Source: Monocercomonoides exilis PA203 (taxonomy: Eukaryota > Protista > Preaxostyla). Taken from it: a stretch of 64,000 nucleotides of DNA. The translations under genes and the position numbers were made by a program. A model generated the notes under the pieces. It was not told where the DNA came from and searched no databases. It was given only the letters and a program-made list of their open reading frames with translations. Where the stretch lies: positions 806,001 through 870,000 of the forward strand of contig LSRY02000023.1 of the NCBI GenBank assembly GCA_001643675.2. Reading direction: 5' to 3'. Below are positions 8,901 through 55,180 of this stretch, in pieces. Position 1 is the first letter of the stretch; every line of letters begins with the position of its first letter.

Positions 8901-9766
8901 CTCCATCGTCATCATCTCAATCAGCTTTGGATCCTTTTTGATATTGTCATTCACAATCTCTCTCAGATCTTCGTTCTCATTTTTAGCTTTTCTCCATCTT
9001 ATTGTAACAATAATTGAAACAATCAGAACAATCAACAAAATCACAACAAGCACAATCACAATTATTGGCCATATCGATCTTTCTTTCTTTCCTCCTTCAG
9101 CAATCCTTTCATCTCCACTTGTTTTGGATTCGCTCCTGTTCTTCAGAATGAAAGAATCAGTGGCTGATGGAGAATCAGCACTCCCAAACAGAATACACAC
9201 ACTCATTTCTGCTTCACTTGCCACCCCTTCAACTGTCTTGACAGGAACAGACCCATGCACCTCTTCTTCTGATATGAAACCACTTTCATCAAACGAATAT
9301 TTCTCAACCACCTCCTCATCCCCAACTGCTGCAACGGTCTTGAACGAGAGGTTGCATGGAAGGAGAACCGATCCTCTGAACACAACATCCACCACCTCCC
9401 CTGACTTTTCCGATGACACACTCTCCACCCTCGGGATGAAAAATGGTGATTCTCTTTCTCCTGCAATCCCTTCCAGTGTGCATCCTTCATCCAATATCCA
9501 CAACGATGTATTCGGCAACACTCCATCCCCTCCCTTCAAGCTCACAACCCTCAATCTTCCTGAGTCTCCACACAGAATGTTTCTTCGTGCCGATCCATAA
9601 TTCACCATCGACGGGTTGTTGTTCTCAAATCTCCCATCATATATCTCCACACTTCCACCTGACAATGAAAGCCCTCCTTTCTTCGAGTTGCTGATTGTTG
9701 TGTCTTTCATCAGAGCATTGCTGGATTGAACATCCACAACTGACCCATTCCATCTGCACATCTCTT
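3904..9766. repeat. Large palindrome, axis ~6835: apparently identical arms 3917-6672 / 6998-9753, diverged inner arms, ~79-bp loop
   Basis: Mirrored ORFs with identical translations and a constant coordinate sum of 13670 (5912+7758, 4070+9600, 5833+7837). Confidence 0.95.
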
Positions 9767-12700: not shown

Positions 12701-15512
12701 CATCATCATTTCCTCGGATTTCATGTTTCTGTCCCGCAAAGGCCAATTCATCACTCATCGCAATCATTCCATTCACGGTGACTTTCTTTGTTCCTGTCAA
12801 CCGTGTGAGGGAGTGCTTCATTGTCAGGCAAGGGAATTGGACTATTCCACAATGTGAGTGATCGGATGCCTCCGAATCACTCACATATATTTCTTCTGGG
12901 GTGGGAAGAAGATAGATGCACAGAGGGATGACAACGCTCGTGTTTCCATTGTCATATCCTTGCACTTTGTCAAAAGAATCCAAAGAGACAGTGACGCATG
13001 TGATTTTTTGTGACTTTGAAGTCACTTCCAGATTTGGTGAAATGGCAAAAATATCATTCCCCCACTTGGCTGTGTTTGTGCCAAAGGAGGAAGAAATCAG
13101 GAAATCTGGATTGTCGTTCATCAATCGAAGAAGAATTCCTCCCCCAAGACCATTGGATGTTGAGCAATAGCATCCATCAAAAGATCCGCCTTTCACTTTC
13201 ACTTCATTTCCATTCCCAACACATAGCATCATTGATCCTCCATTTTCTGATGTTCTGCTTCCACACCCCAAAAATGAGCAAGAGTCCAGATCGATGTTTG
13301 CCTTGTCATTCGAAAACGACATCACAGCTGCTCCACTGTTTGTTCTCTCAATCCCATCAAAGGTGCATTCAGAAAGAGTCAATGAAATCTCATTTGTTGA
13401 AGAAAGCGAAATCAACGAAGTTGAAGAGATAGTCTGTGCCCAGTTCACATTATTCATCTGAAAGATACCATTCTGAACATTTATCAGTTCTGTGGTGAAT
13501 ACTGTTTGTGCGGAGTGTCCGCTTCCAGCAGATATGTTTAGCGCACTTATCCTCAGCTCTCCTGCTCCAGTAATCTCAAACAGCCTTGACCCACGATTAT
13601 TTGAATGATCCGAGTCATGCACAAAAATAAGGTCACTGACAATCAAGGTTCCTGTCGAGACAGAAAAAAGAGATAAATCTGATTCTTCAAATTCTGTCTG
13701 GATTGCTGTGCTCATATCACTTTGGCCATATATTGTGTAAGTGTTGGAACTGCAGTCCACACTCTTGGACTCTTTGATTGTTCCTGTGAGTATCTCGATG
13801 TCAGTCACATGGTTAGGAATAAGTTGAGACAAACAATGGCTGATGGTGTTGCATGGATAGCTTTTATCCAATCCACAAGTATATGTGTCTTTGGCATTAG
13901 GTTCTGTATGCACCGAGGAGACAAATCTGATTCTTCCCGCATCATTTCGAAGCCATTCGCTTTTGTCCACAATTTTTGAATAATCCAAGCTAACTCTGTT
14001 TTCAGTTTCCCTGGTCGAGAAGCAGGTGGAATCAATATTATTTGTTGCAGATCCTTGAAGAACAATGTCATGTCCTCCTTTCTCACATGTGTTATTGTGG
14101 AAAAAGCAATAGAAAAATAATATTCCATCATTGTTTGTATTTATATGTTGGCTTATGGCGCCTCCTCCGCTCAAAGAATAACAATTGCAGAAATGACAAT
14201 TTGAAATAACAACTTTATCCGTTGGATTGAAATGCATAATTGCTCCTCCCTCGCCATCGCCTGTTCCATTTGATTGGCAGTGATCAAAAAATGAATTAAT
14301 TACACATTTTTTCTGTCTTTGAGTTTTTGTTTCACGAATATCAACTGCACCACCATCGTCACCAGAAGAGCAGTTGTTGAACAAGCAATCATCGACAATT
14401 GGTTGGACGCAAATGCTTTCAATCAGTATCCCTCCACCTTCATAATCTGAATTTTTTGCTGCACATGTACATTGAACAAACGTTGTATGGGTCACAATGC
14501 ACTCTGCAATTTTCAATGCATATATTCCTCCCCCTTTTGTCGAGGAAGCATTGCATCTCGTGAAAGAACAATTCTCAACAGCCAGAATTGCAGTTGAATT
14601 ATCATGAACATAAAGAGCTCCTCCTTGGGGTGCTGTGCAGTCAACCCATTCGCACAACGAAAACGATTGGCCTTCTGTTGTGTCCATTCGTTGTTTTCTT
14701 TCAAGATCATTCATTTCTCTCTTCCCAAAGTTTGTTGTTGTGTTTTTGCAGATAAACTCTTGTGAAGAATAGGATCCACTCGAGATCCCTCCTTCAAAGG
14801 CATTCACACACGAATAAATGAGGCAGTTCTCCATTAAACTCAGAAAACATGAATGCTCCGCAAAATGACCGCTATTCGTGTTATATTTCACAGACATGTT
14901 CCTGAAGGCACAATTAATAATCTGTTCACTTTGGCTCTTTCCAGACAATAGAAAATAGTCTGATGATGAGACAACCAGATCAGCAATGATGAAATTTCTC
15001 AAAATGATAGAATTCTTGTGATCAGATGAAAATATGAGACTTCCAGAATAAATATTCATTTGAGGAATCACACTCATGTTTACCATGTTGATTGATCCGC
15101 TTTGAAGATGAAAAGGAGAATCTGACTTTTGGTGGGAAATACAGGAGTCCATCATCAGAGTTGAGTATTCTGTTATAAGCACACATGGCGAGGAAGAATG
15201 TTCAAGTGCCACATTTTTCAGTCCAACTGAAGAATTGTAGAATCCAAAAAATGCATTTATCACTATTGAAATTCCTGACTGCTGTCTTTCTGCTCCAGAT
15301 AATACACTTCGTTCACACAAATTATAATCATTGTTATTTGTGGGATAATGCTCATCTTGTTCAATGATTCGATCCGGATCAATGATGAAATTGTGATTAT
15401 CACGATTTCTGCCAAAATCTTCATATCTTGATGAAGGAACTCCAATGAACCTTTGACATTTGAACACGGCCACAAGAAGCAAGTGTGCAAATAAAAACAT
15501 GTGCAAGCTCAT
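7758..15512 (-). CDS. Giant surface receptor-like protein (signal peptide, beta-helix-like ectodomain, TM, pseudokinase), 2584 aa, intronless
   Basis: Hydrophobic N-terminus MSLHMFLFAHLLLVAVF, GGA(L/I)/FxxN repeats, and a C-terminal ~660 aa identical to the 3..5912 protein. Confidence 0.9.
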   Translation of the reverse strand: MSLHMFLFAHLLLVAVFKCQRFIGVPSSRYEDFGRNRDNHNFIIDPDRIIEQDEHYPTNNNDYNLCERSVLSGAERQQSGISIVINAFFGFYNSSVGLKNVALEHSSSPCVLITEYSTLMMDSCISHQKSDSPFHLQSGSINMVNMSVIPQMNIYSGSLIFSSDHKNSIILRNFIIADLVVSSSDYFLLSGKSQSEQIINCAFRNMSVKYNTNSGHFAEHSCFLSLMENCLIYSCVNAFEGGISSGSYSSQEFICKNTTTNFGKREMNDLERKQRMDTTEGQSFSLCEWVDCTAPQGGALYVHDNSTAILAVENCSFTRCNASSTKGGGIYALKIAECIVTHTTFVQCTCAAKNSDYEGGGILIESICVQPIVDDCLFNNCSSGDDGGAVDIRETKTQRQKKCVINSFFDHCQSNGTGDGEGGAIMHFNPTDKVVISNCHFCNCYSLSGGGAISQHINTNNDGILFFYCFFHNNTCEKGGHDIVLQGSATNNIDSTCFSTRETENRVSLDYSKIVDKSEWLRNDAGRIRFVSSVHTEPNAKDTYTCGLDKSYPCNTISHCLSQLIPNHVTDIEILTGTIKESKSVDCSSNTYTIYGQSDMSTAIQTEFEESDLSLFSVSTGTLIVSDLIFVHDSDHSNNRGSRLFEITGAGELRISALNISAGSGHSAQTVFTTELINVQNGIFQMNNVNWAQTISSTSLISLSSTNEISLTLSECTFDGIERTNSGAAVMSFSNDKANIDLDSCSFLGCGSRTSENGGSMMLCVGNGNEVKVKGGSFDGCYCSTSNGLGGGILLRLMNDNPDFLISSSFGTNTAKWGNDIFAISPNLEVTSKSQKITCVTVSLDSFDKVQGYDNGNTSVVIPLCIYLLPTPEEIYVSDSEASDHSHCGIVQFPCLTMKHSLTRLTGTKKVTVNGMIAMSDELAFAGQKHEIRGNDDESGWIVSDANSTSNSSMITASVETVLSKLIFSLPSSLSSHSTFVSSSSHLTLSHCSLSLQNPSLELTFVFLIVESGILTIDKFSALSIDLSTSPLISLSGSGTKAELMSTKWLNMTNCRFTEIERTDGSGGCVSIDNSHDEDTNTQINIEECEFDECSVLAEGSRGGAVNAQLKGNIQLNIISCTFTGCTAPAGEGKIGFGGGMALKLIDDYSTLVISSPVFDFDKPNIAIYGNDLFVESFNLTKSITNASLPFVSENLADISLNSMRGFDGDDTTNAIPLVYFWRTFGSEIFIGGEGCDVCVCGLSDYPCQSIDYSLSKIQGRNEKNINIIGKGVLQKSVDVSGISVKSDESSMCSLECLSSVEGAEEAAMKTQGITNLELIRFVIPSSFSRGVNVLIHVGSSEGLLTLKDCSFTKNEESREETMNYGLIKADGGTVQLDIVSMQSLSFSKDVISVLSTTILNIRNLTMKNIELDGSSGLSISKSSRRENNEIEHDVVIGWSVFEEVAQNTTDNIPIIRNENDVEPLKIEIRNTAMKKCGGTRCGKGGAMFNVLNEEGKFDCSFCTISGCFCSTAGRGGWLFLECASVTEHPLKFVLSNITFKDNTASKGRDVYVRCHSIEKQIVDEQFLLDFRAPFVKDLAVWGCTTDSFEGEEDLLLRVVKYLSETIFVSSVSENHKNSKQCGEFSMPCQSLDVGVQHIIPSSYSQLLISKETVIVGECEAMDLIIRSLQSSSAALVHLNSTININEGNLITTSETVRIEKLKFDFGQSFSYSGSSIIHEASGQLSLSSIDFSSAGESKGIQFVILNSTLLNIENGILHVDNCSVLFLSFKKPSFLFSGKEISLTNVKLEHMESTINVFDITDCKEVVFNGVSADGVSLSEGCVFSMNEKTSGSVSVGSSSFNNCSRNSEGASILSVSSSSAQIVLSNCTCTNCVSLSEKGSVMKLLDSKDFSMSLCLFDGEFEDENENENRNEFKEMCRWNGSVVDVQSSNALMKDTTISNSKKGGLSLSGGSVEIYDGRFENNNPSMVNYGSARRNILCGDSGRLRVVSLKGGDGVLPNTSLWILDEGCTLEGIAGERESPFFIPRVESVSSEKSGEVVDVVFRGSVLLPCNLSFKTVAAVGDEEVVEKYSFDESGFISEEEVHGSVPVKTVEGVASEAEMSVCILFGSADSPSATDSFILKNRSESKTSGDERIAEGGKKERSIWPIIVIVLVVILLIVLIVSIIVTIRWRKAKNENEDLREIVNDNIKKDPKLIEMMTMEMSPEEQWRRAEREAEKKNEEKIKKRMYAKSLGHSESSEHLLSESGSTEYILGRDSDKIPEWMLEKVDEKEEEEETRKRSSSPSISSTCSTDSDSTFVRGEDLCPTTSSMSNLVDAMACSSPHEKLIVDLRDSLFMLLHGRNEKKEMAIGSLRQREQTAAQILFWVANGALHSFDEMENPLSSLANLSPHIVLFSEHMVIAIATHSDCSSDDSDSSSVFSSTVVTSASDDDDDESDSLPSSAFEDEEDNRYECLRWKAPELLMNRKMGATKESVAFSIGMMLWECLTLQIPFGEYEAEMAGKKIKDGERPKTLVGCESSLGEVASKGMAQKAEERPGLEDLKREFFMRFPEGAIVFTMSDAVDLVGELSKKYSADEKKGDE

Positions 15513-17901
15513 CCCCAGAAATTTATTCAGGTTTCGCTGAAAAAGAAAAAAATATGTGTTTCATATTTGATCAAAGTGCAAAATTAAAACATCAAATTCA
15601 GACCATGAAGAAAGAAAGAATGAGAAATACCTGTCGTTTGAATTGAAACGTTTGCCTTTTCACAAAATTAATTCAATTCAATGTTCTATCTATTTTCCAT
15701 CGCATCCATCTTTATCTTCGAATCCAATGCTGTTTCTTTTTTCATTTATTATTCCTTGTGTTCTGTCTAAATCAAGCTTCTTTTCAGTTGATGGCGGTCA
15801 TTTCATCTGTATGGCTGTCTTTTCGTCAAAACTTCTGAACAGAAAAGAACAGAACAAAAGAAGATTTTGACGAATCCATCGGTTGAGTGGCATTCACAAA
15901 ATATTCCCTTCAAAAAAAGAATGAAGATTCTTCAACGCTGCTCAGAAGAAAGAATCGATTTCAGCAGATCACTTTCGTTGTTGTCAAATATTCCGTTCAA
16001 ATGGGAGATGACATTTCCTGTTTTTTTCCACACAAAGCTGAATGTGAAGCAGAAAGGAAGAACGCGGAAATGGAGAGCGGAGATAGACAGCGAAGGTCTG
16101 ATGCAATGATGCGCTCACCCCCAGATTGTTGAGGATATTCTCTCCATTTTCACTTTTTCTGAAAACAGACAATTTGAGATCAATCAAAGAACAAAGGAGA
16201 AAGGACAAAAAAGACATTCTGCCATTCAACATGAAAAAACACACCATTCATTTGAAACGAGTCATCATCATCACTTTGGCCAGTTTTCTCAAGTTCTCTG
16301 AATCTATTTGCCTGTTCTGAAATTCTTGTTGAGAAAAAACAGAAATTTCAATGACTTATTATCTTGAAAAAGAAATGGAACAGAAAGACTGAACATAGGA
16401 TTTTCAAACTCGAAGGTTCATTTCAAAAGAATTGATTTCATTGAGACATATTGAGCAGCAGAGATACAAGTTTGGAACAAGAAAATCGCAAATGCAAGCC
16501 TTTGAAATTGGCTGATGTGTTCTTGTTGATTGTTCGTGTATTGCGCGATAAATATACAGTTTGTGAAGTCACTGGGCTTTTGAAGATAATTGAACAATCG
16601 AAAGAAGCTTCTGATTTGCAGTTTCTTCGCTTTGAAAAATTTATTCAAATGAATTTTTTTGTTGGGGAAGAAGAAAAATACGAAGATGCAAATTCCGGCA
16701 AATGTTCAGTGTCTTTCCCCTGCTTCAAATAGCCAATTCGCAATAGAGCGAATATCCGAACGCAAGGAGCAGGTTTGCTCCTCAATAATGAGTATTGGTC
16801 ACGATTTATGGGCGGTTTAAGATCTAACTTCGCCAATACTCAAATTCAAAGTAGACCCAAATTGTCCGCAACAAAAAGAAGCAACAGCCTGTGACAAAAA
16901 ATACAGAGACGGCGATGGAAAGGAATTAGATCTATTTTTGAAACAAAAAAGAATGAAAAATTATCATCGAAGAATTTGCATGGATCAAAGTGCGAAATAC
17001 ATCATTCGAAACAAAGACTGCGTACAGCTGATAAAACAGAAAGGAAAGCCGTGCATTATAATTATTGTAAATATTTCCGCGTTATACTGCGAGTCAATTT
17101 CAGAAATTAAAACCACGAAAAATAGTGAAACATTTTGATAGAATAAAGATATGATAATTTTTCGACTTCAAAATAGAATAAAACTACACATTATTTTGCT
17201 TATTTATTAGGAGTAAGAACTGCCTATTGAAGCGAGATATAGTTAAATAATGAAATCGCAAGATGTTGCAAGAATTTAAAAAGATAGATCCACAAATTGC
17301 AGAGAGATTATTTTGGAGGAAGAACTTTCTATCAATGTGGAGATAATTAATTGAAATAATTAATACAAAATAGAAGAGATATATTCAAACAATGCTGTGA
17401 TATACAAATGAAAACAAAACCAACGACAAACTGCAGAATATTGTGTGAATTAATTAGGAAGAAGATTCGCTCATATCCACGAAATAATATATAATAACAG
17501 AAGCCACGATATTTCATCAGATACTTAAACAAAACGAAGATATGAATGATAATTGACTTTTAAAAGAATGAAACAACAAATATCGTAAGAATTTATTAGG
17601 AACAAGATCCGCGAAGTGTATCAAGATACAGTTAAATTTTAAATATAAATAAAAATAATAAATCGCTTGATGTTACTAGAATTAATGAGAATAAATGCAC
17701 ACATTGCAGCGAGATTACCATTGAGGAAAGATTAAATTACAATAAAGAGATAATTACATATAATACTGCTGCGAATTTGCTTAAGATAGTTACATAACAA
17801 TAATTATTCGATAATTCGCGATATTGAGAAAGCCATATACGTATTTGTTTTATTGCTAGATGATATCACAAGAATAGTGATAAAAGACGCGCAATGATAA
17901 G

Positions 17902-17911
17902 ATATATATAT

Positions 17912-17967
<56 letters not shown>
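17902..17967. repeat. (TA)n microsatellite
   Basis: Direct reading. Confidence 0.95.
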
Positions 17968-17968
<1 letters not shown>

Positions 17969-17971
17969 AGA

Positions 17972-18170
17972 AAGCCGCGCTATGCCGCGAGACAGAGAGA
18001 GAAGAGAGAGCCGCGCTTTGCCGCGAGACAGAGAGAGAAGAGAGAGCCGCGCTATGCCGCGAGACAGAGAGAGAAGAGAGAGCCGCGCTTTGCCGCGAGA
18101 CAGAGAGAGAAGAGAGAGCCGCGCTTCGCCGCGAGACAGAGAGAGAAGAGAGAGCCGCGTTTTGCCGCGA
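17972..18170 (+). repeat. 36-bp tandem repeat, ~5 copies (gccgcgagacagagagagaagagagagccgcgctt)
   Basis: 12-aa periodicity PRDRERRESRA(L/M) in the ORF track. Confidence 0.9.
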
Positions 18171-19669
18171 GATCATGATTTGTTTTATAGATTGAAAAGC
18201 CGCGCCTTGTCGCAAGATCATGATTTTATTAAATGAAAGAAGAATTGAGAAGTGAAGCGAGAGAGGGATAAATAGAGAATTTACGAAATATCAAAAGAAG
18301 ATTATTCAGGAAACGAGATACACAATTACGCGAGATACTGATAAATACAGTGACGAAATATTTATATTTATATAATATAAGAATATTTGTAATAATCGAT
18401 ACATATATTACAGCGATATTTTAATTAATGGATAATTTCATTACAGTTACAAGATAATTATTTGAAATGAAGCTGTGCCTATTCGAGAGAGAGTTACAAA
18501 GAATCAAACCGAGTTCGATCTCAAGATCATGAGATAAGAGAGAGAATAGGAAGACGTGCTTTACCACGAGACTAAGAGACGAGAGAGTAACCGCGTTCAA
18601 TACCGAGACTTTGAGAAGAGATAGAGCAGTGAACGGCGTTTCGCAGCAAAATGACGATAGAGATAGAAAGCTCAGTAAACCGATTGACTTTTGCTAAGGA
18701 AATATAGACAAGTTGTGTTACGACACAATATTAAACTGAAAGAGAGAAATATCATAAATTAAGAATTGGAAATGTTACGTTTCATTATAAGAGAAATTAT
18801 CACATAAGGGAAACCGCTAAATATTACTGGACTGAGAGAAAAGAGAAATTTGTGGATTGTCGCGAGATAATAGTGGAGCAACAAAAAACTGATGATCGAA
18901 AAAGTTAATATGAAGAGAGAACCGAGTTTGCTGTGAGAAAAGGAGAGAAAGAAATTGAGAGAAATGGCGATTTGATAATACTATAAGAAACAGTACATAA
19001 TTACGAGATATGTGCAGACACTGTAACCGCGAAACTTTTTGAGAAGACTGAAGAAGTGAAATCCGCAGAGAATCGCGAGGAGAATATTGAGCATGAGATC
19101 GCGGTAGACCGCGAGAGGAGGATACATAAGGAAGCCGCATAGTGCAGCGTAATGAAAATTGAAGAAGATTCTGCATTTCTCAGCTAAAAATGCTGATAGA
19201 CGCACTCAGCCGGACTTAGATAAAACTGGACTATGCACCGAAAGCGTAAAAAGTGGCAGAGATATTTCAAACAATCGCACCGAGAAGACTATATGTTGAT
19301 AATCGCACACCAGATTGATCAGGTGCCCTGCCAAACTATTTGTAAACTACACTCTCTGAGAAGGAAGAGAAAGAGAGAATAGTCTAGAAATGAGATCGTA
19401 CCAGTCCGTTATTGAGAAACATTGGATTGACCTCTAAAGAGATGAGAAAAGAAGGCTAGAAGATACCTTCATGAGAGGTCAGAAGTATTAGACTGGAGAG
19501 GAGAATATCTTAGGAAGGACATCTTTCAAACATGGGGAGAATAAGTTGGAGTGAAGGATATATCAGCAGCAGGGGATTCGTAGAGAGCGCTGCAATAATT
19601 AAAACTATTATTTGATAGAGAAAGAATCGATAAAACAGACCCCCTCATAGAAAAGATGCTAAGTGAATT

Positions 19670-20420
19670 ATGGCAGAGTTCACTGAAACACTTTCGAATA
19701 CTAACCTATCAAGTGGAGTGATTCATCAGACAGAACAGAAAGTTCTGGATTCTATTAACCTCTTCAGAAAGACTAAGGTTGACGTGAAAGACATAGAGAT
19801 ATTTCTTAAAACCTATGTGGGGGAGAAACCAAGAAGAGGCAATCGATACAAATCGATGTGGGACTTGACAATCATCACGAAATGGGCAGAAGCCACTCAC
19901 GATATGAAAGACCCACAGACCCTCCAAAGGAGAGCTCTCATCCTGACTATGATCTTTGGAGCTGTAAGGCCAGCAGAGCTGGAAGGATGAGAAGAGAGAC
20001 TACGATATTCAAAGAGGATTTAGTCCAGACACAAGTGCGAACGAAAACATCAGGGGGAGAGACTGTAAAGGTTATTATTAATAAGCATCCAAATCCACGC
20101 ATCGATGCGGTGGTAGCGCTCCAACGTTGGATGGGTTATACGAAGACAACCTTTAGAGACGAACATGTGTGGTTCGATATAGAAGAGGGCTGGATTGTTA
20201 ATTTGCAGAAAATCAAAGAGGAATTAGTCACTATCCTGAAAGAGAATGGAATATCCGACACATTCACCGTGTACACGATAAGATAATCTGTGATTACACA
20301 CTTTGCAAGACAACAAGATGCAGATTGGAAAGCAATCAATGCATATGCGAGATGCACGCCAGGTTCAAGAGTGGCCCAGGAATATTACACAGTTTTTCAA
20401 GTTCAAGATATGGAATTAAT
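19670..20420 (+). pseudogene. Tyrosine recombinase pseudogene of element 1
   Basis: GAVRPAEL, RTKTS, YTIR*, AYARC...EYY are collinear with 25138-26211. There is a 1-bp deletion near 19985 and a TAA at ~20284. Confidence 0.85.
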
Positions 20421-20983
20421 CCTGGAAACAATCGGTAACCAGGACCCCTAACGGGAGAAGAAGGAAGGTCGGAGAAGGACAGAAAAAGGAAGGAAATGAA
20501 AATCGAGAAAGGAAAATTAGAGATGAAAGATTTCACCAAAAATATACTAGAAGCTGGGAGAAAAGAAGATATGAATGAAGGAAAGAAGTTAAAGAAAGGA
20601 GACTCGTTGCTTAGAGAAGAGAGAAAGCTAAGAGAAATAACTTGGTTACAGAACGCCTCATCCCGACCACCCTAACGTTGGAGAACACCCCTCATAGTTC
20701 CCAGCAGCGTTTGCGAGCTGACTGGATGCAAATACACTGCCTCACAGAGAAAGAAGAGCACAGACCGGATGAAGAGTGGTGTGAAAAGTCTTGGTTCGAT
20801 GTTAAAGAATTCAAGTGAAACGAATACCCGATCGAGAACACCCCGAAAGCATTCCAAGAAAGGGAGGGAGAAGAGACAAGGGTAGCACCTTCATCCGCAG
20901 TCCCTCTGTTCATCCGCCGCACGACAAGGTGCTAGGCCGGAGGGTTTAAGATCAGAGGAGAGAAGAGAACGAGGGATTTCAAA

Positions 20984-21079
20984 ACTCATTATTGAGGAGC
21001 AAACCTGCTCCTTGCGTTCGGATATTCGCTCTATTGCGAATTGATAGAACGCAGTGAGCAGGATTTGCTCCGAAATAAT
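20984..21079 (+). other. Internal complementary region (ICR) of element 1
   Basis: Reverse complement of the left terminus fused through TTG (21041-21043) to the reverse complement of the right terminus. Confidence 0.95.
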
Positions 21080-23581
21080 ACTGACGCGGATGGAGAGACT
21101 CAGAGCGGCTGGGTGCGTAAGAGAGAAACATATTTGGAGGAATATGACGAGAAAAAGGGCGAGATATTAAAGGATAGAGGAAAAGATCAACCGCCCGAAG
21201 ATATTAATGTGCACCTAGGATCTTTTTTGAGAAACATGGAAACAAATAAAAAGTTCAAGCATGATCCTACTCCTTTACAAGATTATTATTGTTTTTACAG
21301 AGAAGAATTGAATATTTAATATGCAGTGTGTGATGATTGGGGTTGCTCTGCTGATGCAGCAGAAGAGTGGGAGGCAGAGCATAATACACGCAGTTTTCTT
21401 TTCCACGCCTTGCGAAAGCGAGAGTGGTTTTTCTTTCTGCTCCGTTTTTAATTTTCGCCTCACCGGATCCCTGCACAGCCTGCAGGAGGGAGCTCCGAGG
21501 GGTATGCCCCCTGCCCTCTGGTCTTCGAGACCATGGCAAAAGGCGAAGTCGGCGGTGAAGTGATGCGGACAATTCAAAATACACTTATTTTTGTCTAAAT
21601 GTTTTTGTCTATATTTTCATCTCGCCCTTTTTCCCACGTCATTTTGGGAGGGCGAAGTTTTCACTTAAACCGCCCATAAATCGTGAACAATACTCATTAT
21701 TTCGGAGCAAATCCTGCTCACTGCGTTCTATCAAAAAAAAATTTTTTTTTTAAAAGATAATTAGAAGATATCATCAAATAAAGCATTGAAACTTCTTCAA
21801 AAGCCAATAAAGGAGGTGACACTGAAACCGCGGAAGAGGATCGAAAATTCAAATCTTCCAAAGTCGGATGTGAAGTTCAAACAATAGAGACAGCCAAGAA
21901 AGCTTTTTGAATGTCTTTTTGTAGCAAGTGTCTTTACGGAGCAAGATGGAATATATTTGGTGCAATTCTCGTTTTGTTGTTTTCGAAACATGGGCTGAAA
22001 CAGAAGCTGTAGATCTTCATCTTTCTAGCTTCTGAAGCTCCACCACGAAAGGTTGGGCTTCGCTTTCAAAAAAGTCCACAAAAAGCAGGTAAATCCTTTC
22101 GAAAAGTTGAGGCAGTTATCTCACTTCCATTGAGGAAGATAACTTCTTGTTTCATTGTTTGGCGTTGCTTTCTTTCCTTTTCATCTCGATAAATACCTCT
22201 TCTTCGGCACAGTTGCAATTTTATTTGTCAAAAATACACCGGAAACTGTTCTCATGACTTATGTTCCAAAGAAATGCTCCATTTGGTCTGATGTTCGATT
22301 CCAGTCGAATTCCATCTTATTTTTCTTCTTTTTTTATAAATCTATAAGTCGAATTTGTTTTCATCTCTTGTTCCGATTAAAAATCATAAAAATCATGTAT
22401 ATTGCGCAACTTCATTTATTTCCTAATTGCTATTCAATAATCAGCTCCATTCACATCGTGTTGCTATCCAAAGATGGGATTGGTCATTTTGACAATGATT
22501 CTGATTCTTGGGCTTTGGAAAGGATACAGATGGAAATATCTTCACAACAAGCAGAACAATAAAAATTACATACACTACGTCTTTTTCGCTATTAACAAAA
22601 TTGTTGTATTCCTTCTGGCCATCCAATTGTCAAAAATAATCTGACAATTCGCAATAGAGCGAATATCCGAACGCAAGGAGCAGGTTTGCTCCTCAATAAT
22701 GAGTATTGGTCACGAATTATGGGCGGTTTAAGATCTAACTTCGCCAATACTCAAATTCAAAGTTGATCCAAATTGTCCGCAATGAAAATGAAGCAACAAC
22801 CTGTTACAATAGAACACAGAGACGGCGATGGAAGTGAATTAGATCAAAATTTAACACTGGTCAAAGTGGAATATTTTAGTGTAAAATTTTCCAGGATTTA
22901 AGAATGAAATTTAGCATCCGGAATAGAAGAAAGTGCACAGCCGAAGATGTCGAACGGCAAGCTGCACATTGCGAAGAGATTGTATCAAGAACAGAAGCTA
23001 CAAAATTCTGTGAGATAATTATTGGAATTAGAGCCACATTGTGCAGCGAGACAATTGTCCAAACAGAAACTATAAAAAATCGAGAGATGTTTAAACAGAA
23101 TGAAGATATAATATTCTATAGGTTTTAAAAAAGAATACAACTACACATTATTTTGTTTATTTATTAGGAATAAGAACAACGTATTGAAGCAAGATATCGA
23201 TATATTAAGAAAGTACTTGATATCGCAAGAATTTTAAGAGATAGATCCACAAATTGCAGAGAGATTATTTTGGAGGAAGAATTTCCTATCTAATGAAATT
23301 TCGAAACAATATAATTAATATTCACAATATAGAAGAGATATATTCAAATAATGCTGTGGAATTCAAATTTATACAAAACCAACGAGAAACAAGAGAATAT
23401 TGATAGAATTTGTAAGGAAGAAGATCCGCGCATAGCCGCGAGATGTGAATTAATTCAGAAGTGATTATATAGCAATAATAATTTGATTTCAATTCGAATA
23501 TATATAATTAAAATGAGACAAAGCATTGTATCGAAATGCTTACAATGAACATAATCGTGTTTAATCGTTAGACTAAGATTG

Positions 23582-23760
23582 AAGAGAGAGAAGAGAGAGC
23601 CGCGCTATGCCGCGAGACAGAGAGAGAAGAGAGAGCCGCGCTTCGCCGCGAGACAGAGAGAGAAGAGAGAGCCGCGCTTCGCCGCGAGACAGAGAGAGAA
23701 GAGAGAGCCGCGCTTCGCCGCGAGACAGAGAGAGAAGAGAGAGCCGCGCTTTGCCGCGAG
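23582..23760 (+). repeat. 36-bp tandem repeat, ~5 copies, same unit as in element 1
   Basis: 12-aa periodicity AARQREKREPRF in the ORF track. Confidence 0.9.
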
Positions 23761-24340
23761 ATTAAGAGAGGAGAGAGAGACCGCGTTCAATGCCAAGACC
23801 ATGAGAGGAGAGATAGCAGAGAACCGCGCTTCGCAGCGAGATGATAATAGAGATAGAAATCTCTGAAAATCGATTGGCTTTGCAAAGGAAATATTGACAA
23901 GCTATGTCACGACACAATATTAAACTGAAAGAGAGAAATATCATAAATTAAGAATTGGAAATGTTACGTTTCATTATAAGAGAAATTATCACATAAGGGA
24001 AACCGCTAAATATTACTGGACTGAGAGAAAAGAGAAATTTGTGGATTGTCGCGAGATAATAGTGGAGCAACAAAAAACTGATGATCGAAAAAGTTAATAT
24101 GAAGAGAGAACCGAGTTTGCTGTGAGAAAAGGAGAGAAAGAAATTGAGAGAAATGGCGATTTGATAATACTATAAGAAACAGTACATAATTACGAGATAT
24201 GTGCAGACATTGTAACCGCGAAACTTTTTGAGAAGACTGAAGAAGTGAAATCCGCAAAGAATCGCGAGGAGAATATTGAGCATGAGATCACGGTAGGCCG
24301 CGAGAGGAGGATACATAAGGAAGCCGCATAGTGCAGCGTA

Positions 24341-24859
24341 ATGAAAATTGAAGAAGATTCTGCATTTCTCAGCCAAAATGCTGATAGACGCACTCAGCCG
24401 GACTTAGAAAAAACCGGACTATGCACTGAGAGTGATAAGGTCGCAGAGATATTTCAGACAATCGCACCGAGAATACTAGATACAATTTTAGAACAGATTG
24501 TGCCGGTGCCCTGCGGAAGTACTTGGAGACTATCCTCCGTGAGAAGGAAGAAAGAGAGAGGAACACCAGAAGACGACATAGTGCTAGTCCACCCGTTCCT
24601 GAGAAACATTGGACGGACCCTGAAAGAGAAGATGAAGGAAGCCCAGAGGGAACTAACGATTCTGATTCTGCCAGCCTGGCGGGGGCAGACCTGGACCGCG
24701 CTACTGCAGCCTGGGCATTCGATAAAGACCCTGGGGACCTTTCAGGAGTGCATGATACCGGGAGCGAAGATGAGAAGAGAAGGCCGGAAATTACCCCCAG
24801 GAGAGGTTATAAGCGTTGTACTGGAGAAGAGAATGTTCAAGGAAGAGACCTCTTCTTAA
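24341..24859 (+). pseudogene. Vestige of the DIRS RNase H end and DAM-like methyltransferase domain
   Basis: DALSR (24387-24401) then DYAL in an alternative frame. VHPFLRNIGRTLKEK...LILPAWRGQTWTALL resembles the DIRS MT C-terminal pattern PP...l.rvl.K...ilv.P.W..q.W. Confidence 0.65.
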
Positions 24860-25137
24860 CAGGGGGAGAACACGTTGGAGCAAAAGAGATAGCAGCAGCA
24901 ATACTTAGAAATCAAAAGAGCGAAAGAGATACGTGGAGAGCGCTGCGAAGATTCAAGCAGTTCCTAGATAGAGAGAGCATGGATGACACTGACCCCCTCA
25001 CAAACAAAGATGCAAAGTGGATTATGGCAGAATTTATTGAAACTTTATATAATACAAATGTTTCAAGGGGAGAGATTGATGGAGCTGAACGAAAAGAATG
25101 ATAGTCTATTAATTTTTTCAAAGAGACGAAGGTTGAA

Positions 25138-26211
25138 GTGAAAGACATAGAAATATTTCTAAAAACCTATGTGTGGGAGAAACAAAGAAGAGGCAAACGA
25201 TACAAATCGACGTGGGACTTGACAATCATCACGAAATGGGTTGAAGCCACTCACGATATGAAAGACCCACAGACCCTCCAAAGGAGGGCTATCATCCTGA
25301 CCATGATATTTGGTGCGTTAAGGCCAGCAGAGCTGGAGAGGATGAGAAGAGAGACAACGATACTTAAAGAGGATTTAGTCCAGATACAAGTACGAACGAA
25401 AACATCAGGGGGAGAGACTGCAAAGGTTATTATAAATAAGCATCCAAACCCACGTATCGATGCGGTTGTAGCGCTCCAACGCTGGATGGATTATACGAAG
25501 ACAACCTTTAGAGACGAACATGTGTGGTTCGATCTCAGGGGGAGGCAACCTGCAAACTTGCAGAGGATTAAAGAAGAATTAGTGGCTGTCCTGAGAGAGA
25601 ACGGAATACCCGACACATTTACCGCGTACTCGATAAGACACGCTGTGATAACACATTTGGCAAGACAACAAGCTGCAGATTGGAAAGCAATCAATGCGTA
25701 CGCGAGATGGGCGCCAGGCTCTAGAGAAGCCCAGGAGTATTACACCGTGTTACCAGTTCAGGACACGAGATGGATCCTGGAGACAATCGACGGCCCAGTA
25801 CCCCTGGCAGAGAAGGGAGGAAAGTCGGAGAAGGACAGCAAAAGAAAAGAAATTTCAAATAAGAATACAGAATCTGAAACAAAGGAGTATCCTGAAGAAA
25901 CATCACAATCTGGGGGAGAAGCGGAGACGAGCAAGAGAAAGAATTCGAAGAGACGAGGGTCGACTCGAGAGAAGAGTTCGCATCATGAGGACGATATAAC
26001 ACAACCCACCAGGGGTGATGAGACACCTTCCATAATTCCCCGCAGCATCATGGAGCTGGCGGAGGGCAGACAACCTGCCTTGCAGAAGAAACTCGAGACC
26101 GATCGGAGGAAACGCGGAGAGAGAAGCATAGGACAAATTGTCATGTCCGCTCAGGTACAGAAGACCCGATCGAGAACCCCCCGAAGACAGCGCAAGAAGG
26201 GGAGGGAGTAG
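25138..26211 (+). CDS. DIRS-type tyrosine recombinase catalytic domain with a basic low-complexity tail; the in-frame N-terminal part (~24860-25098) is cut off by TGA-TAG
   Basis: R (GALRPAEL), K (RTKTS), YSIR in place of HxxR, W (ARWAPGS), Y (EYY). The listed start codon is GTG, not ATG. Confidence 0.85.
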   Translation: MKDIEIFLKTYVWEKQRRGKRYKSTWDLTIITKWVEATHDMKDPQTLQRRAIILTMIFGALRPAELERMRRETTILKEDLVQIQVRTKTSGGETAKVIINKHPNPRIDAVVALQRWMDYTKTTFRDEHVWFDLRGRQPANLQRIKEELVAVLRENGIPDTFTAYSIRHAVITHLARQQAADWKAINAYARWAPGSREAQEYYTVLPVQDTRWILETIDGPVPLAEKGGKSEKDSKRKEISNKNTESETKEYPEETSQSGGEAETSKRKNSKRRGSTREKSSHHEDDITQPTRGDETPSIIPRSIMELAEGRQPALQKKLETDRRKRGERSIGQIVMSAQVQKTRSRTPRRQRKKGRE

Positions 26212-26321
26212 GGATAGAGGCCGCACCTTCATCCGCAGTCCCTCTGTTCATCCGCCGCACGACAAGGTGCTAGGCAGGAGGGTTTAAGATCAGAGGAGAG
26301 AAGAGAACGAGGGATTTCAAA

Positions 26322-26418
26322 ACTCATTATTGAGGAGCAAACCTGCTCCTTGCGTTCGGATATTCGCTCTATTGCGAATTGATAGAACGCAGTGAGACAG
26401 GATTTGCTCCGAAATAAT
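26322..26418 (+). other. ICR of element 2
   Basis: Exact reverse complement of both of its own termini, joined at TTG. Confidence 0.95.
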
Positions 26419-27345
26419 ACTAACGCTGATGGAGAGACTCAGAGCGGCTGGGTGCGAGATGAGAGAGAAACATATGGTGAAGAATAGGACGAGGAAAAAG
26501 TGGCGAGATAGCAGAGGAGATAGGAAAAGAGAATCCGTCCAGGGATATTAAGCACACCCAGAACCTGTATTTACAAACAGGAAGGCTAGTGAGACCGTTA
26601 AGAAGAACCTTACTCCTTTAATTCATTACAAGAAAGTGCAAAGAAAAGAGTCAGACTGGTCCATACAGCGTGCGGCGAGCGGATTTGCTCTGCTGGATCA
26701 GTTGAAGAGCGGGAGGCAGAGCAGAGTGCACGCAGTTTTCTTTTCCACGCCTCGTGAAAGCGAGAGTGGTTTTTCTTTCTGCTCCGTTTTTAATTTTCGC
26801 CTCACCGGATCCCTGCACAGCCTGCAGGAGAAAGCTCCGAGGGGCAATGTCCCCTGCCCTCTGGTCTTCGTGACCAAGGCAAAAAGGCGAAGTCGGTGGT
26901 GAAGTGAAGCGGACAATTCAAAATACACTTATTTTTGTCTAAATGTTTTTGTCTATATTTTCATCTCGCCCTTTTTCCCACGTCATTTTGGGAGGGCGAA
27001 GTTTTCACTAAAACCGCCCATAATTCGTGACAAATACTCATTATTTCGGAGCAAATCCTGTCTCACTGCGTTCTATCAAAATTTCGTCGTCGGGAATGTC
27101 TTTCCCAGCATCCACATCAAAACAGAAAATAATATTTCAAGTCATGCCGTTAATGTCGATTCACCGACTTCTCATTTCGTGAAGAAATATTTGAAAAATA
27201 CAAATAATACTCACAAAATAGCCATTATTATTTTTTGTTGATTCATTCCTTTCCGAAAATGTCAAAGCGAATGAGGAAGGGGTGAACGCACGTATTTTCA
27301 TTGCAATTCTTATTTTTATTTTTGACAATTTTCTCCTCTCCAAAC

Positions 27346-28834
27346 ATGTTCTCGTTCAACGTGAACGTCCAAATGGTGCAGTTTTCAGAATACAAAGCTC
27401 GTCAGAAAATGCAGGCGAAAGATGGCACTCAAAAATTAATGAGTTTGCATTCATTGCTGCATTCGAATTCTTGCTGATTGCATTTCTGTTTTTATGATTT
27501 TTATGATTATTTTTGTTCAGGGTTGTTTTCTGAAGTTGAACGGAGCAATGAGGAAGAGCAAAAAGCGAAAATTGAAGAAATGAATGGGGTGATGGAAGAG
27601 ATGAGCAACGAGGAATTCTATTCCGTCTTCTCAGAAGGCATGTTTCAACAACATCAACAAAGTGATGAAAAGAAAGAGAATAAACGTTGAGAATGCGTGT
27701 TTGCAGCTGCTGAAGCACATTGGGCATTTCAAAGTGCTGAAATGTGTGTTGATCCATGACTTTGCAGAATGCACTTTGAATGGAAGACTTGAAACGATGA
27801 TATCTGAAGAAGAAGAGAAGAAAGAAGAAAAAGACGAAAGGCTTCTTGTTGATGCTTGCGAAAGCTATCTTTTGCTGAACGACAGATTCAATACGTATTT
27901 GGTGTTGATTTGTGTGCCATGTCTTCTGAAGGCTGCATCGAACAAGGAGGAGAGCGAGGAGGCGCAAAAAGAGGTGGAAATGGCATTGTTGGCTTTGAGC
28001 AATATTCACGAAAGATTTGTTTGAGAACCGCCATTTTTATTTATTTATTTATTTTTATTTATTTTTATATTTTTCAAAGGAAATTCCAGAAGAATTGTTC
28101 TTCGACGAGATCAAAGAAATTGTGGAATACCATCATGAGCACCACAACCTCACTCATCTTGCGTATGTTTCAGCTTGGAAATTTGAGATGCGCAGATTGC
28201 GTTTCAATGAAAATTTGTACGACGCTGTTGCGAATGAACGGCATTTTGCGAAAGCGACAGGGAGAGAGCTGGAAGAGCTGGCAAAATGTGTGGATTGGCA
28301 GGCAAAAAGGAGAAAAAGGAAAGAGAAGAAGACTTTCTTTTGATGAGATGGCTTGAAGCGTTTGGGGATTTCTTTGGGAAATGCAAATTGTGGAATGAAG
28401 AGTATTGTGGGGTATTGGGGGGCATTGCTGAGATATTCCGAGTTGGAAGGGAGAAATACCGAGAAATTGGGGGACAATGCATTTGTGTATTTGGATGTGC
28501 AGCGAGGAACAGAAAATTTGAAGTTGATATGTTGATGAAAGGCGGAGCTTTTGATATCATTTTGGAGGAGATTCAGGGGCTGACGTTGGATGACTATTTT
28601 TTGGAGAGCTGTATGAAATGCCTTTTGGACATTTCGAGGCGGTTGAAATTGAAGGATGATGATGAAGCATTGGAAGTGAAAAGAAAGGCAACGAAAAGGA
28701 AGGTTTTTGAAAAGCTGGAAGAAGAAGGATACGAAGATATCATCGCATGCTTTCATAAAAGGTTGGATTATCTGAACAGAAAGTATTTCAAAGAATTATC
28801 GTTGAATGTTTAAGATTATTTTGTGAATTTTTGA
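27346..28834 (+). pseudogene. Member of a helical-repeat hypothetical multigene family (CVPCLLKAASNKEESEEAQKEVEMALLALS type), two introns, frameshifted
   Basis: Coding-like segments in shifting frames with GT..AG AT-rich introns, frameshifts near 27645 and 28300, and a premature TAA at 28811. Confidence 0.65.
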
Positions 28835-29309
28835 GGAAACACCTTGAATTTTGTGACTCATATTAATTCTTTTTCTTTTTCTTTTTCTTTTTTCGCATTT
28901 CACAAAATTGAAAACAATCCATCGTTTGATTTTTAATGAAATCTGATTAATATCAAACGAATCACTTTGAAAAATTAAATGTAAACAATATTACATACTC
29001 AAAAAGAGAAAAAAGTTGAAGCGTGTAAGATACAAAAGTTAAAACATTATAACAACTAAACACTCAGCTAGAAGGAATGTTCATTTTCTGTTCGCATAAA
29101 ATTAGTGATATTTGGAGCATTGAAACAATGGATAAAAAGTGATCATTTTTTTTACAAGAAAATATATAGAATTGGTAAAAAAAAAGGTAAATAACACTTT
29201 CAATTCCAACGAACAAAACATACAAAAAATCTTTAGAAATTTTGCATCGAGGTTAAAAAGATTCAAAATCGGATTTATGGAGATTTGAAGAATTTTCGTT
29301 GATCTTTGA

Positions 29310-52767: not shown

Positions 52768-55180
52768 GTTTGGAGAGGAGAAAATTGTCAAAAATAAAAA
52801 TAAGAATTGCAATGAAAATACGTGCGTTCACCCCTTCCTCATTCGCTTTGACATTTTCGGAAAGGAATGAATCAACAAAAAATAATAATGGCTATTTTGT
52901 GAGTATTATTTGTATTTTTCAAATATTTCTTCACGAAATGAGAAGTCGGTGAATCGACATTAACGGCAGGACTTGAAATATTATTTTCTGTTTCGACATG
53001 GATGAACGAAAAGACATTCCCAACGATGAAATTTTGTCTGATTATTTTTGACAATTGGATGGCCGGGGGGAATACAACAATTTTGTTAATAGCGAAAAAG
53101 ACGTAGTGTATGTAATTTTTATTGTTCTGCTTGTTGTGAAGATATTTCCATCTGTATCCTTTCCAAAGCCCAAGAATCAGAATCATTGTCAAAATGACCA
53201 ATCCCATCTTTGGATAGCAACACGATGTGAATGGAGCTGATTATTGAATAGCAATTAGGAAATAAATGAAGTTGCGCAATATACATGATTTTTATGATTT
53301 TTAATCGGAACAAGAGATGAAAACAAATTCGACTTATAGATTTATAAAAAAAGAAGAAAAATAAGATGGAATTCGACTGGAATCGAACATCAGACCAAAT
53401 GGAGCATTTCTTTGGAACATAAGTCATGAGAACAGTTTCCGGTGTATTTTTGACAAATAAAATTGCAACTGTGCCGAAGAAGAGGCATTTATCGAGATGA
53501 AAAGGAAAGAAAGCAACGCCAAACAATGAAACAAGAAGTTATCTTCATCAATGGAAGTGAGACCGCAGTTTCAACTTTTAGAAAGGATTTACCTGCTTTT
53601 TGTGAATTTTTTTGAAAGCGAAGCCCAACCTTTCGTGGTGGAGCTTCAGAAGCTAGAAAGATGAAGATCTACAGCTTCTGTTTCAGCCCATGTTTCGAAA
53701 ACAACAAAACGAGAATTGCACCAAATATATTCCATCTTGCTCCGTAAAGACACTTGCAAAAAAAAATCATTCAAAAAGCTTTCTTGGCTGTCTTTATTGT
53801 TTGAACTTCACATCCAACTTTTGAAGATTTGAATTTTCGAGGTTATTCTTCCGTTTCCATATTGCCTCATTTATTGACTTTTGAAGAGGTTTCGATGCTT
53901 TATTTGATGACATCTTCTAATTCTCCTTAACTTTTATTTTATTTTATTTTATTTTTTTTTGGTTATTCGAAGCAGAGGACAGACACTGAACATTTGCCGG
54001 AATTTGCATCTTCGTATTCTTCTTCTTCTCCAACAAAAAAATTCATTTGAATAAATTTTTCAAAGCGAAGAAACTGCAAATCAGAAGCTTCTTTCGATTG
54101 TTCAATTTTCTTCAAAAGCCCAGTGACTTCACAAACTGTATATTTATCGCGCAATACACGAACAACCAACAAGAACACATCAGCCAATTTCAAAGTCTTG
54201 CATTTGCGATTTTCTTGTACCAAACTTGTATCTTTGATGCTCAATATGCCTCGATGAAATCAATTCTTTTGAAATGAACCTTCGAGTTAGAAAATCCAAT
54301 GTTCAGTCTTTCTGCCATTTCTTTTTCAAGATAATAAGTCATTGAAATTTCTGTTTTTTTCTCAACAAGAATTTCAGAACAGGCAAATTGATTCAGAGAA
54401 TATGAGAAAACTGGTCAAAGCGATGATGATGACTTGTTTCAAATGAATGGTGTGTTTTTTCATGTTGAATGGCAGAATGTCTTTTTTGTTCTTTCTCCTT
54501 TGTTCTTTGATTGATCTCAAATTGTCTGTTTTCAGAAAAAGTAAAAATGGAGAGAATATCCTCAACAATCTGGGGGTGAGCGCATCATTGCATCAGACCT
54601 TCGCTGTCTGTCTCTGCTCTCCATTTCCGCGTTCTTCCTTTCTGCTTCACATTCAGCTTTGTGTGGAAAAAAACAGGAAATGTCATCTCCCATTTGAACG
54701 GAATATTTGACAACAACGAAAGTGATCTGCTGAAATCGATTCTTTCTTCTGAGCAGCGTTGAAGAATCTTCATTCTTTTTTGAAGGGAATATTTTGTGAA
54801 TGCCACTCAACCGATGGATTCGTCAAAATCTTTTTTTGTTCTGTTCTTTTCTGTTCAGAAGTTTTGACGAAAAGACAGCCATACAGATGAAATGACCTCT
54901 ATCAGCAGAAAAGAAGCTTTATTCAGACAGAACACAAGGAATAATAAATGAGAAAAGAAACAGCATTGGAGTTGAGTACAAAGATGGATTCGATGAAAAA
55001 TCGATGGAACATTGAATAGAATTAATTTTGTGAAAAGGCAAACGTTTCAATTCAAACGACAGGTATTTCTCATTCTTTCTTTCTTCATGGTCTGAATTTG
55101 ATGTTTTAATTTTGCACTTTGATCAAATATGAAACACATATTTTTTTCTTTTTCAGTGAAACCAGAATATATTTCTGGGG

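Follow-up and report, generated by a model that had tools for sequence, protein, structure and literature searches.

DIRS elements and their non-autonomous relatives

DIRS-1 of Dictyostelium discoideum and the DIRS1-like elements combine inverted, non-identical termini with an internal complementary region (ICR) complementary to both outer ends and with a tyrosine recombinase (YR), and their reading frames overlap. Cryptons, the YR-only DNA transposons, likewise have a YR without a reverse transcriptase (RT); they move as DNA and are not known to carry ICR or ITR replication signals. DIRS1-like elements integrate at a 3-nt junction and leave the target unduplicated, which is a rule of the DIRS family (PMC3266345). 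Few natural non-autonomous derivatives of YR retrotransposons are on record, the searchable literature yielding TOC1 and SIRE. TOC1, a DIRS-type element of Chlamydomonas, has termini in common with its autonomous partner (PMC9940879), and SIRE of Trypanosoma cruzi, about 430 bp long, has the ends of its partner VIPER and no YR gene (PMC6681497). INT1 at the Chlamydomonas MT+ locus is DIRS-derived and retains RNase H, methyltransferase and YR without RT (PMC9940879); it is a locus-bound fragment in a tandem repeat. Experimental precedent for mobilization in trans comes from Dictyostelium only. There, the engineered DIRS-1 construct trDIRS-1bsr, which lacks GAG, RT and RNase H, yielded cDNA through the trans action of endogenous RT; the ICR was essential, being required to complete retrotransposition. 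The construct is artificial, and its passage through an entire cycle could not be scored (Malicki et al. 2020, PMC7192593).

The stretch of Monocercomonoides exilis DNA analyzed here (the window, 64,000 nucleotides) contains two mobile elements, e1 and e2, that lie in the same orientation and were both recently inserted (Table 1). They are very probably non-autonomous internal-deletion derivatives of an abundant M. exilis family of DIRS1 architecture, copied via enzymes supplied in trans. The elements share with DIRS1-like elements the inverted non-identical termini, the ICR, the YR and the 3-nt junction, and their full-length relatives in M. exilis also have overlapping reading frames; however, they lack gag, RT and RNase H and are derivatives of the family rather than autonomous members. 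They have no replication enzymes of their own and, as in TOC1 and SIRE, their cis-acting termini are common to an autonomous partner, here one resident in M. exilis. Unlike SIRE, the derivatives in M. exilis measure 4.4-5.1 kb and carry a YR gene and a pol tail, and in contrast to INT1 the lineage is dispersed, retains its cis signals and is still inserting. In gene content e1 and e2 are essentially the same as trDIRS-1bsr, yet they are natural copies that show completed insertions. Our search of the literature found no description of DIRS elements for metamonads, the group to which M. exilis belongs. The elements belong to an ordinary class of genomic parasite, here in a form that has seldom been documented, and they leave the current view of DIRS function unaltered.

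Table 1. Features of e1, e2 and their surroundings, numbered from the first nucleotide of the window
Feature	Position	Strand	Details
e1, gag-less, RT-less DIRS derivative	16734..21734	+	5001 bp; repeat architecture, ends and empty site, tblastn
e1 left terminus	16734..16834	+	ICR-complementary 64-nt end 16734-16797; left inverted-repeat arm 16774-16834
e1 5' non-coding A-rich module	16835..17901	+	at gag position; degenerate 48-nt internal repeats; no Pfam-matching ORF, no gag similarity
e1 (AT)n microsatellite, then 36-nt minisatellite	17902..18172	+	5.7 minisatellite units
e1 linker, probable decayed pre-RT pol	18652..19197	+	ends at deletion junction; 97% identical to e2 linker
e1 pol C-terminal remnant (after RNase H)	19198..19453	+	degenerate; 141-nt deletion, 6 stops; lesions common to C48 copy (L028)
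e1 YR gene, broken	19530..20496	+	shared N-terminal lesions; private frameshifts and stops
e1 ICR	20980..21079	+	repeat architecture
e1 right inverted-repeat arm and right terminus	21651..21734	+	ends ...TCTATCAA; arm 21651-21711
Host spacer separating e1 from e2	21735..22644	.	found in paralogous arm; aligns to 53928-53042, 95.5%
e2, gag-less, RT-less DIRS derivative	22645..27079	+	4435 bp; repeat architecture, ends and empty site, tblastn
e2 left terminus and left inverted-repeat arm	22645..22745	+	arm 22685-22745
e2 36-nt minisatellite	23583..23785	+	5.6 units
e2 linker, probable pre-RT pol remnant	23842..24385	+	
e2 pol C-terminal remnant	24386..24859	+	full-length pol residues 734-890; tblastn 79% identity, E=1.8e-71
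e2 YR reading frame, interrupted	24523..26211	+	two adjacent in-frame stops 25099-25104; 90% identical to full-length YR frame
e2 ICR	26318..26418	+	repeat architecture
e2 right inverted-repeat arm and right terminus	26995..27079	+	arm 26995-27055
e2 empty target site, inverted paralogous arm	53034..53036	-	GACAA/AATTT
e1 empty target site, inverted paralogous arm	53959..53961	-	CAA then A-run; ...CCAA/AAAAAAA

Insertion sites, termini and interior

An inverted paralogous arm (55193 to 51147), with 95-96% sequence identity, passes uninterrupted through the sites of e1 and e2. The absence of both elements from this arm, already noted in a preliminary description of the locus, indicates that each arrived by insertion, and is supported by clean empty sites at both positions; filled and empty sites, when compared, show a 3-nt junction and no duplication of the target. 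That the insertions postdate the segmental duplication is likewise supported. The right junction of e2 recurs in unitigs from independent runs on the same sample; the sequence turned up in no RNA run. The start of e2 had been set at 22640 and lies about 5 nt further right, at 22645, TCTGA at 22640-22644 being host flank that is present in the paralog too. The filled and empty sites indicate that insertion is carried through in nature by a DIRS derivative devoid of gag, RT and RNase H, a step beyond the reach of the Dictyostelium helper/donor assay.

The inverted-repeat arms of e1 and e2 show 87-89% complementarity, and the 40 nt and 23 nt lying outside them are unique to each end. Each ICR, when reverse-complemented, matches (98-100%) the opening 64 nt of the same element joined to its closing 39-40 nt, with the two end segments overlapping on TTG and the junction spelled ...TCTATCAATTCGC..., confirming in both elements the initial view that the termini are inverted and that the ICR spells the end-to-end junction. 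An indel variant of a copy's own ICR is also present at its right end in 21 of the 25 informative copies, e1, e2, L002 and L003 among them. All copies compared end in CAA on the right; the left flanking trinucleotide is CAA in six of 12 distinct element copies and TAA, TTA, ACA, AAT or GAA in the rest. This terminal CAA, together with TTG in the ICR, differs from the NTT and AAN usual in DIRS1-like elements.

Queried by tblastn with gag and pol of their own family, e1 and e2 gave no match to gag or to pol residues 1-733, the pol match beginning at residue 734, and family-specific tblastn found no trace of gag, RT or RNase H in three further copies either. Interior ORFs of e1 and e2 gave no Pfam match. 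The lack of RT and gag claimed at the outset is thereby borne out, but the accompanying view of the interior is not. The minisatellite had been thought to replace gag, RT and RNase H, whereas its 36-nt unit also occurs at the gag/pol boundary of full-length copies, and what had been read as replacement by A-rich DNA includes a linker that resembles pre-RT pol. This linker, the A-rich stretch beside the deletion, is about 70% similar to sequence that other copies, those of a divergent subfamily, have shortly upstream of RT, at 140-160 nt. The linker-like pre-RT region of L023, the one copy examined, is degenerate. On these similarities, the stretch adjoining the deletion is probably a decayed remnant of pre-RT pol and not foreign filler; its resemblance to pre-RT sequence suggests that the derivatives probably originated when about pol residues 260/290-733 were lost in one simple internal deletion, together with decay. 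The ancestor would thus have lost the entire RT and RNase H, with a junction at about 24385/24386 in e2, and the upstream gag and pre-RT region would since have turned non-coding. The derivatives keep the left and right inverted termini, the ICR, the pol tail beyond RNase H and the YR gene, and this minimal set can be used for tests of cis requirements. A further difference from DIRS1-like elements is that no Dam-like methyltransferase domain was detected, the pol tail giving no Pfam match even at E<=10, full-length copies included; some distant homologues from other sources carry PF05869.

Relatives across the genome

RT-less and RT-containing copies could be counted genome-wide, as the preliminary description had anticipated, in a census made from coordinates alone that represents a lower bound. 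The RT-less junction is present at at least 29 loci (77-100% identity) and the linker at at least 33, some of the loci counted being palindromic segmental duplicates and not insertions in their own right (C69; C18:551784/604560). Full-length copies of 6.0-6.3 kb, with gag, RT/RNase H and YR, number at least 78-97. One of these, L035, has a gag of 425 aa and a pol of 890 aa (RVT_1, 6.7e-28; RT_RNaseH, 1.1e-8) in addition to a YR, and an uninterrupted 434-aa RT/RH match was found in at least 13 of the at least 97 RT loci scored. YR loci (n=98) are RT-adjacent in 78 cases and linker-adjacent in 10. The termini and ICR of RT-less copies match those of full-length copies at 97-100% identity, and the existence of many full-length copies with near-identical (97-98%) termini and ICR indicates that helpers are present.

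Identities between e2 and e1 are discordant from one segment to the next (linker 97%, 5' module 74%, YR core 84%), and RT-less and full-length copies are intermixed in a YR tree. The mosaic make-up of every copy would be accounted for if RNAs packaged together often exchanged places as templates. The RT-less lineage reveals heavy modular recombination among DIRS copies.

Mobilization and the fate of the recombinase gene

The RT-less copies were most likely mobilized in trans by the enzymes of their full-length relatives. In a process modeled on DIRS-1, gag and RT/RNase H from the full-length elements would reverse-transcribe transcripts of the derivatives, the ICR would template restoration of the ends, and a YR, perhaps that of the element itself if its gene is intact, or else that of a helper, would integrate the cDNA next to a CAA/xAA trinucleotide without target-site duplication. 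Retention of the ICR and inverted termini, covariation of right ends with their own ICR and mosaicism with full-length copies all argue for replication via reverse transcription. The suggestion that e1 and e2 borrow RT in trans is well supported, given dispersed RT-less copies and helpers that share their termini and ICR, and their movement after the loss of RT is upheld by the common RT-less junction and the empty paralogous sites. Neither of the two findings named beforehand as telling against this account was made: there is no decayed RT in the copies searched, and dispersed RT-less copies are many.

Pure parasitism in trans leaves unexplained why some 2 kb of pol tail and YR are retained in all sized RT-less copies. 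It is possible, but doubtful, that the lineage is semi-autonomous, borrowing gag and RT while a recombinase of its own is needed or useful and is kept by selection in master copies. The YR region persists in every sized RT-less copy, and in the RT-less C34 copy (L002) the YR frame is open, with 409 aa free of stops (Phage_integrase, 3.4e-10). The YR core of L028 is lesion-free downstream of a damaged N-terminus, and YR-core dN/dS between RT-less copies is 0.11-0.27 (0.11 for L002 versus L028). However, YR frames are interrupted in four of the five linker-type copies examined and also in L021, an RT-less copy that contains gag. In e2, the ORF at 25138-26211 contains the catalytic domain (Pfam Phage_integrase, E=1.1e-9), and the YR of e1 contains many stops and frameshifts; the claim that the elements carry their own integrase is only partly supported, since a YR gene is present but a working integrase can be credited to neither, their frames being broken where that of the C34 copy is open. 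Moreover, e1 and L028, the C48 copy, have six indels and 10 stops in common in the polC/YR N-terminal region, which in full-length copies is constrained coding sequence (pN/pS 0.13), indicating that this sublineage moved while the N-terminus of its YR was already damaged; the e1-type deletion, judged by spacing, is present at at least four loci. Full-length pairs have the same YR dN/dS as RT-less pairs and the YRs of the two groups interleave. Since recombination with full-length elements is rampant, there is no ascribing this constraint to the RT-less lineage, which perhaps inherited it by recombination. The plus strand is T-poor, and open frames therefore come cheaply.

It is unlikely that functions are split such that selection keeps the YR, and perhaps the pol tail, in master copies of the parasite and helpers provide gag and RT/RNase H. 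Under such an arrangement, integration would favor a recombinase from the same RNA or particle, and the lineage, if this were true, would offer a natural dissection of cis- and trans-acting DIRS functions in a metamonad without described DIRS elements.

Crypton-like transposition, in which YR-mediated excision and reintegration as DNA would have dispensed with reverse transcription, is very improbable. A YR gene without RT and a 3-nt junction with no target duplication would both fit, but within each element the ICR and the two termini are conserved and vary together, as expected for ends rebuilt from the ICR on cDNA, the at least 29 copies are mosaic with RT-bearing elements, and e1 inserted recently despite a badly broken YR. 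Contigs from the DNA runs, which cannot exclude skip or circle joints, contained none. An intermediate between DIRS and Cryptons, as proposed in the preliminary description, finds no support; in contrast to Cryptons, the M. exilis elements keep all DIRS cis signals, ITRs and ICR included, each right end varies in step with the ICR of the same copy, and they recombine with RT-bearing relatives. That RT was present at insertion and then decayed independently in each copy, or that the copies spread by segmental duplication alone, is barely credible in a genome admittedly rich in inverted segmental duplications, where some RT-less loci are inverted pairs with identical scores, as e1 and e2 have one junction, 97% identical linkers and no RT trace, are absent from the duplicated arm and differ in their flanks from L002, L003 and L028, the empty sites and common junction refuting this reading for the window copies. 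Recognition of the RT-less lineage also helps to classify part of the "unclassified" repeat fraction, put at 35%, of the M. exilis genome (PMC8767320).

Architecture and insertion of the two elements

Repeat analysis of positions 14000-30000 of the window delineated two elements, e1 and e2, which share a common orientation and have every repeat block in register. Each internal complementary region (ICR) is the reverse complement of the first 64 nt plus the last 39-40 nt of its own element, with a TTG overlap, and thus spells the end-to-end junction TCTATCAATTCGC. Together with an e2 ORF (25138-26211) containing a Phage_integrase domain (Pfam, E = 1.1e-9), this bears out the preliminary description of two elements with inverted termini, an ICR, and a tyrosine recombinase (YR) gene. 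Both elements also carry 5.6-5.7 units of a 36-nt minisatellite.

Coordinates of e1 and e2 (window positions) and of related copies in the M. exilis assembly (G000; C, contig; L, individual copy)
Feature	Location	Basis
e1	16734-21734	repeat analysis
e2	22645-27079	repeat analysis; start fixed by empty site
e1 inverted arms, inset from ends	16774-16834/21651-21711	repeat analysis
e2 inverted arms, inset from ends	22685-22745/26995-27055	repeat analysis
e1 ICR	20980-21079	repeat analysis
e2 ICR	26318-26418	repeat analysis
Linker-like pre-RT stretches	C2:1566797; C26:336788; C56:195740; C2:1593833	linker+junction search
Expanded minisatellite examples	G000:C48:68092-73317; G000:C30:257680-259184; L037; L040	
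Truncated-RT or extra-486-nt copies	G000:C91:225385-230077; G000:C17:821584-825272; L023 (G000:C34:281942-287633)	
Best preserved full-length copy	L035, 3882-9959 (G000:C1:2399182-2405258)	
Decayed-gag copy	L021 (G000:C20:564118-569895)	
Copy with RT-less-type 5' module and RT	L033:3707-9967 (G000:C36)	

Positions 15500-29000 have an inverted paralog, running from 55193 to 51147 and 95-96% identical, as part of a large inverted segmental duplication. The paralog is uninterrupted at the empty sites of e1 (...AACCAA/AAAAAAAT, slash at the insertion point) and e2 (...CAGACAA/AATTTC), and this continuity across both insertion points proves that the elements arrived by insertion, confirming their reported absence from the paralogous arm; the e2 empty site also places the true start of that element at 22645. 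Comparison of filled with empty sites revealed no target duplication for either element, integration adjoining CAA. The same architecture and the same duplication-free 3-nt junction are found in DIRS1-like elements (PMC3266345). The right junction and interior of e2 were also present in unitigs from independent runs of the same sample. Within the compared stretch, e1 and e2 are the sole large differences between the duplication arms.

Junctions compared in 12 distinct element copies proved asymmetric: all 12 end on the right in ...TCTATCAA, with CAA as the final trinucleotide, and have a variable trinucleotide before the left-end TTCGC (CAA in six copies; TAA, TTA, ACA, AAT, or GAA in the rest). 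The element proper may therefore be TTCGC...CAA, inserted preferentially after xAA, rather than the product of a strict CAA/CAA crossover. The two different RT-less elements lie in one arm 905 bp apart, a closeness that may reflect a target preference, either regional or for AT-rich DNA.

Full-length relatives and the loss of RT

In a genome search with e2, most relatives matched the 3' 2.7 kb only. Ten of these, with upstream sequence included, are 6.0-8.2 kb long and possess termini and an ICR as in e2, the longer copies having an expanded minisatellite. The best preserved, L035, has a 425-aa ORF in the gag position, a pol of 890 aa containing RVT_1 (6.7e-28) and RNase H domains, and a YR frame with Phage_integrase; Pfam gave no match in gag or the pol tail. 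These three frames overlap, each offset by -1 relative to the preceding one, and the YR frame has a constrained N-terminal part without an opening AUG, a sequence layout suggestive of either a fusion product or two -1 frameshifts in succession. Of 468 candidates in the genome, 97 were scored as RT/RNase H loci, 13 of them with an uninterrupted full-length match; these counts, like the RT, linker, and YR classes below, are based on match coordinates and are lower bounds. Full-length copies that could act as helpers are thus plentiful.

In tblastn searches with L035 queries, gag and pol residues 1-733 had no match in e1, e2, or three further RT-less copies (L002, L003, and L028); the pol match starts at residue 734, immediately after RNase H. 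Pfam likewise gave no match in the interior ORFs. e1 and e2 have a common deletion junction, and the 544-nt linker preceding it is 97% identical between them. A linker+junction query matched across the junction at 29 genome loci (77-100% identity), a few of them palindromic duplicates, and among 98 scored YR loci RT lies 609 nt upstream in 78 and is replaced by the linker in 10. Independent decay of RT in each copy, which the preliminary description had offered as a way its reading could fail, is rejected by the common junction and the lack of any RT trace; nor are dispersed RT-less copies lacking, as the junction-spanning loci demonstrate. Spread by duplication only was likewise rejected as an explanation.

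Sequence about 70% identical to the linker occurs in other copies; the match to the query ends about 10-30 nt before the junction, and in genome coordinates this sequence lies 140-160 nt upstream of the start of RT. This position makes it most likely that the linker represents a decayed pre-RT part of pol from a divergent subfamily. On this origin of the linker, a simple internal deletion removing about pol residues 260/290-733 would have produced the RT-less form. Comparison of the linker with the L035 RT region (blastn, tblastx) did not convincingly establish homology, the matches being confined to weak, collinear ones in tblastx, and the linker-like pre-RT region of L023 is degenerate. The minisatellite, earlier taken to be part of what replaced gag and RT, is ancestral, being located at the gag/pol boundary in full-length copies.

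Mobilization and the state of the recombinase

When each terminus was compared with its own ICR in a table of indel variants, the right-terminal variant (A, T, or none) was that of the ICR in 21 of 25 informative copies, including e1, e2, L002, and L003, with 0-1 mismatch per 38 nt, as expected if ends are rebuilt from the ICR. Identity varies strongly by segment: between e2 and e1 it is 97% in the linker, 74% in the 5' module (the non-coding A-rich part in the gag position), and 84% in the YR core, and between e2 and L003 it is 96% in the 5' module and 80% in the YR tail. In a YR-core tree, in which internal branches are short and terminal branches long, RT-less and full-length YRs are interleaved and the RT-less copies are not monophyletic. 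Frequent template switching between co-packaged RNAs would explain these discordant segments and the interleaved tree. That RT is borrowed in trans, as first proposed, and that the RT-less lineage is mobilized in this way, is well supported; Crypton-like DNA transposition was rejected as an explanation, and the suggested link between DIRS and Cryptons found no support.

The YR gene is kept in every RT-less copy whose length could be determined (4.4-5.1 kb), mostly in damaged form. That of e2 has two adjacent in-frame stops (25099-25104) and that of e1 numerous stops and frameshifts. e1 and L028, whose insertion sites are unrelated, have in common six indels, one of them a deletion of 141 nt, and 10 YR-frame stops across the pol tail and the N-terminus of YR. 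In full-length copies the N-terminal stretch is coding sequence under constraint (pN/pS 0.13). The spacing typical of the e1-type deletion occurs at at least four loci. These lesions indicate that a sublineage moved with a truncated recombinase gene. The YR frame of L002 is open, and YR-core dN/dS between RT-less copies is 0.11-0.27; since full-length pairs give equal values and recombination is rampant, this constraint is not assignable to the RT-less lineage. The claim that the lineage carries its own integrase is thus supported insofar as the gene is retained, with one open frame; a self-sufficient enzyme is not well supported.

A DIRS-1 construct without GAG, RT, and RNase H was reverse-transcribed in trans, with the ICR essential (Malicki et al.; PMC7192593). 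Non-autonomous YR retroelements as such are already known, among them TOC1 (PMC9940879) and SIRE (PMC6681497). In the searchable literature, non-autonomous DIRS were found in the Chlamydomonas report alone (PMC9940879), and no description of DIRS in metamonads was found. The M. exilis genome paper, which reports an 82.3-Mb, 101-contig assembly with 35% unclassified repeats, makes no mention of DIRS (PMC8767320).

Structural variants and a neighboring ORF

Other forms of the family were also encountered. In L021 a divergent, decayed gag is joined with the pol tail and YR, RT/RNase H being absent; L033 combines a non-coding 5' module like that of the RT-less copies with complete RT, RNase H, and YR. 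Further copies have, between the linker-like stretch and the junction, either an RT that lacks its 5' part and begins near RT residue 180 or 486 additional nt; they represent other variants of the deletion or intermediates. Expansion of the 36-nt minisatellite can be extensive in this family: the array measures about 5 kb in one RT-less copy and 1.5-2 kb in some full-length ones. Elsewhere in the window, 7758-15512 on the minus strand is an intron-free ORF of 2584 aa whose C-terminal part contains a tyrosine/serine-threonine kinase domain (Pfam, 8.5e-10); the ORF is a member of an expanded kinase family which, according to the genome paper (PMC8767320), overlaps "unclassified repeats".
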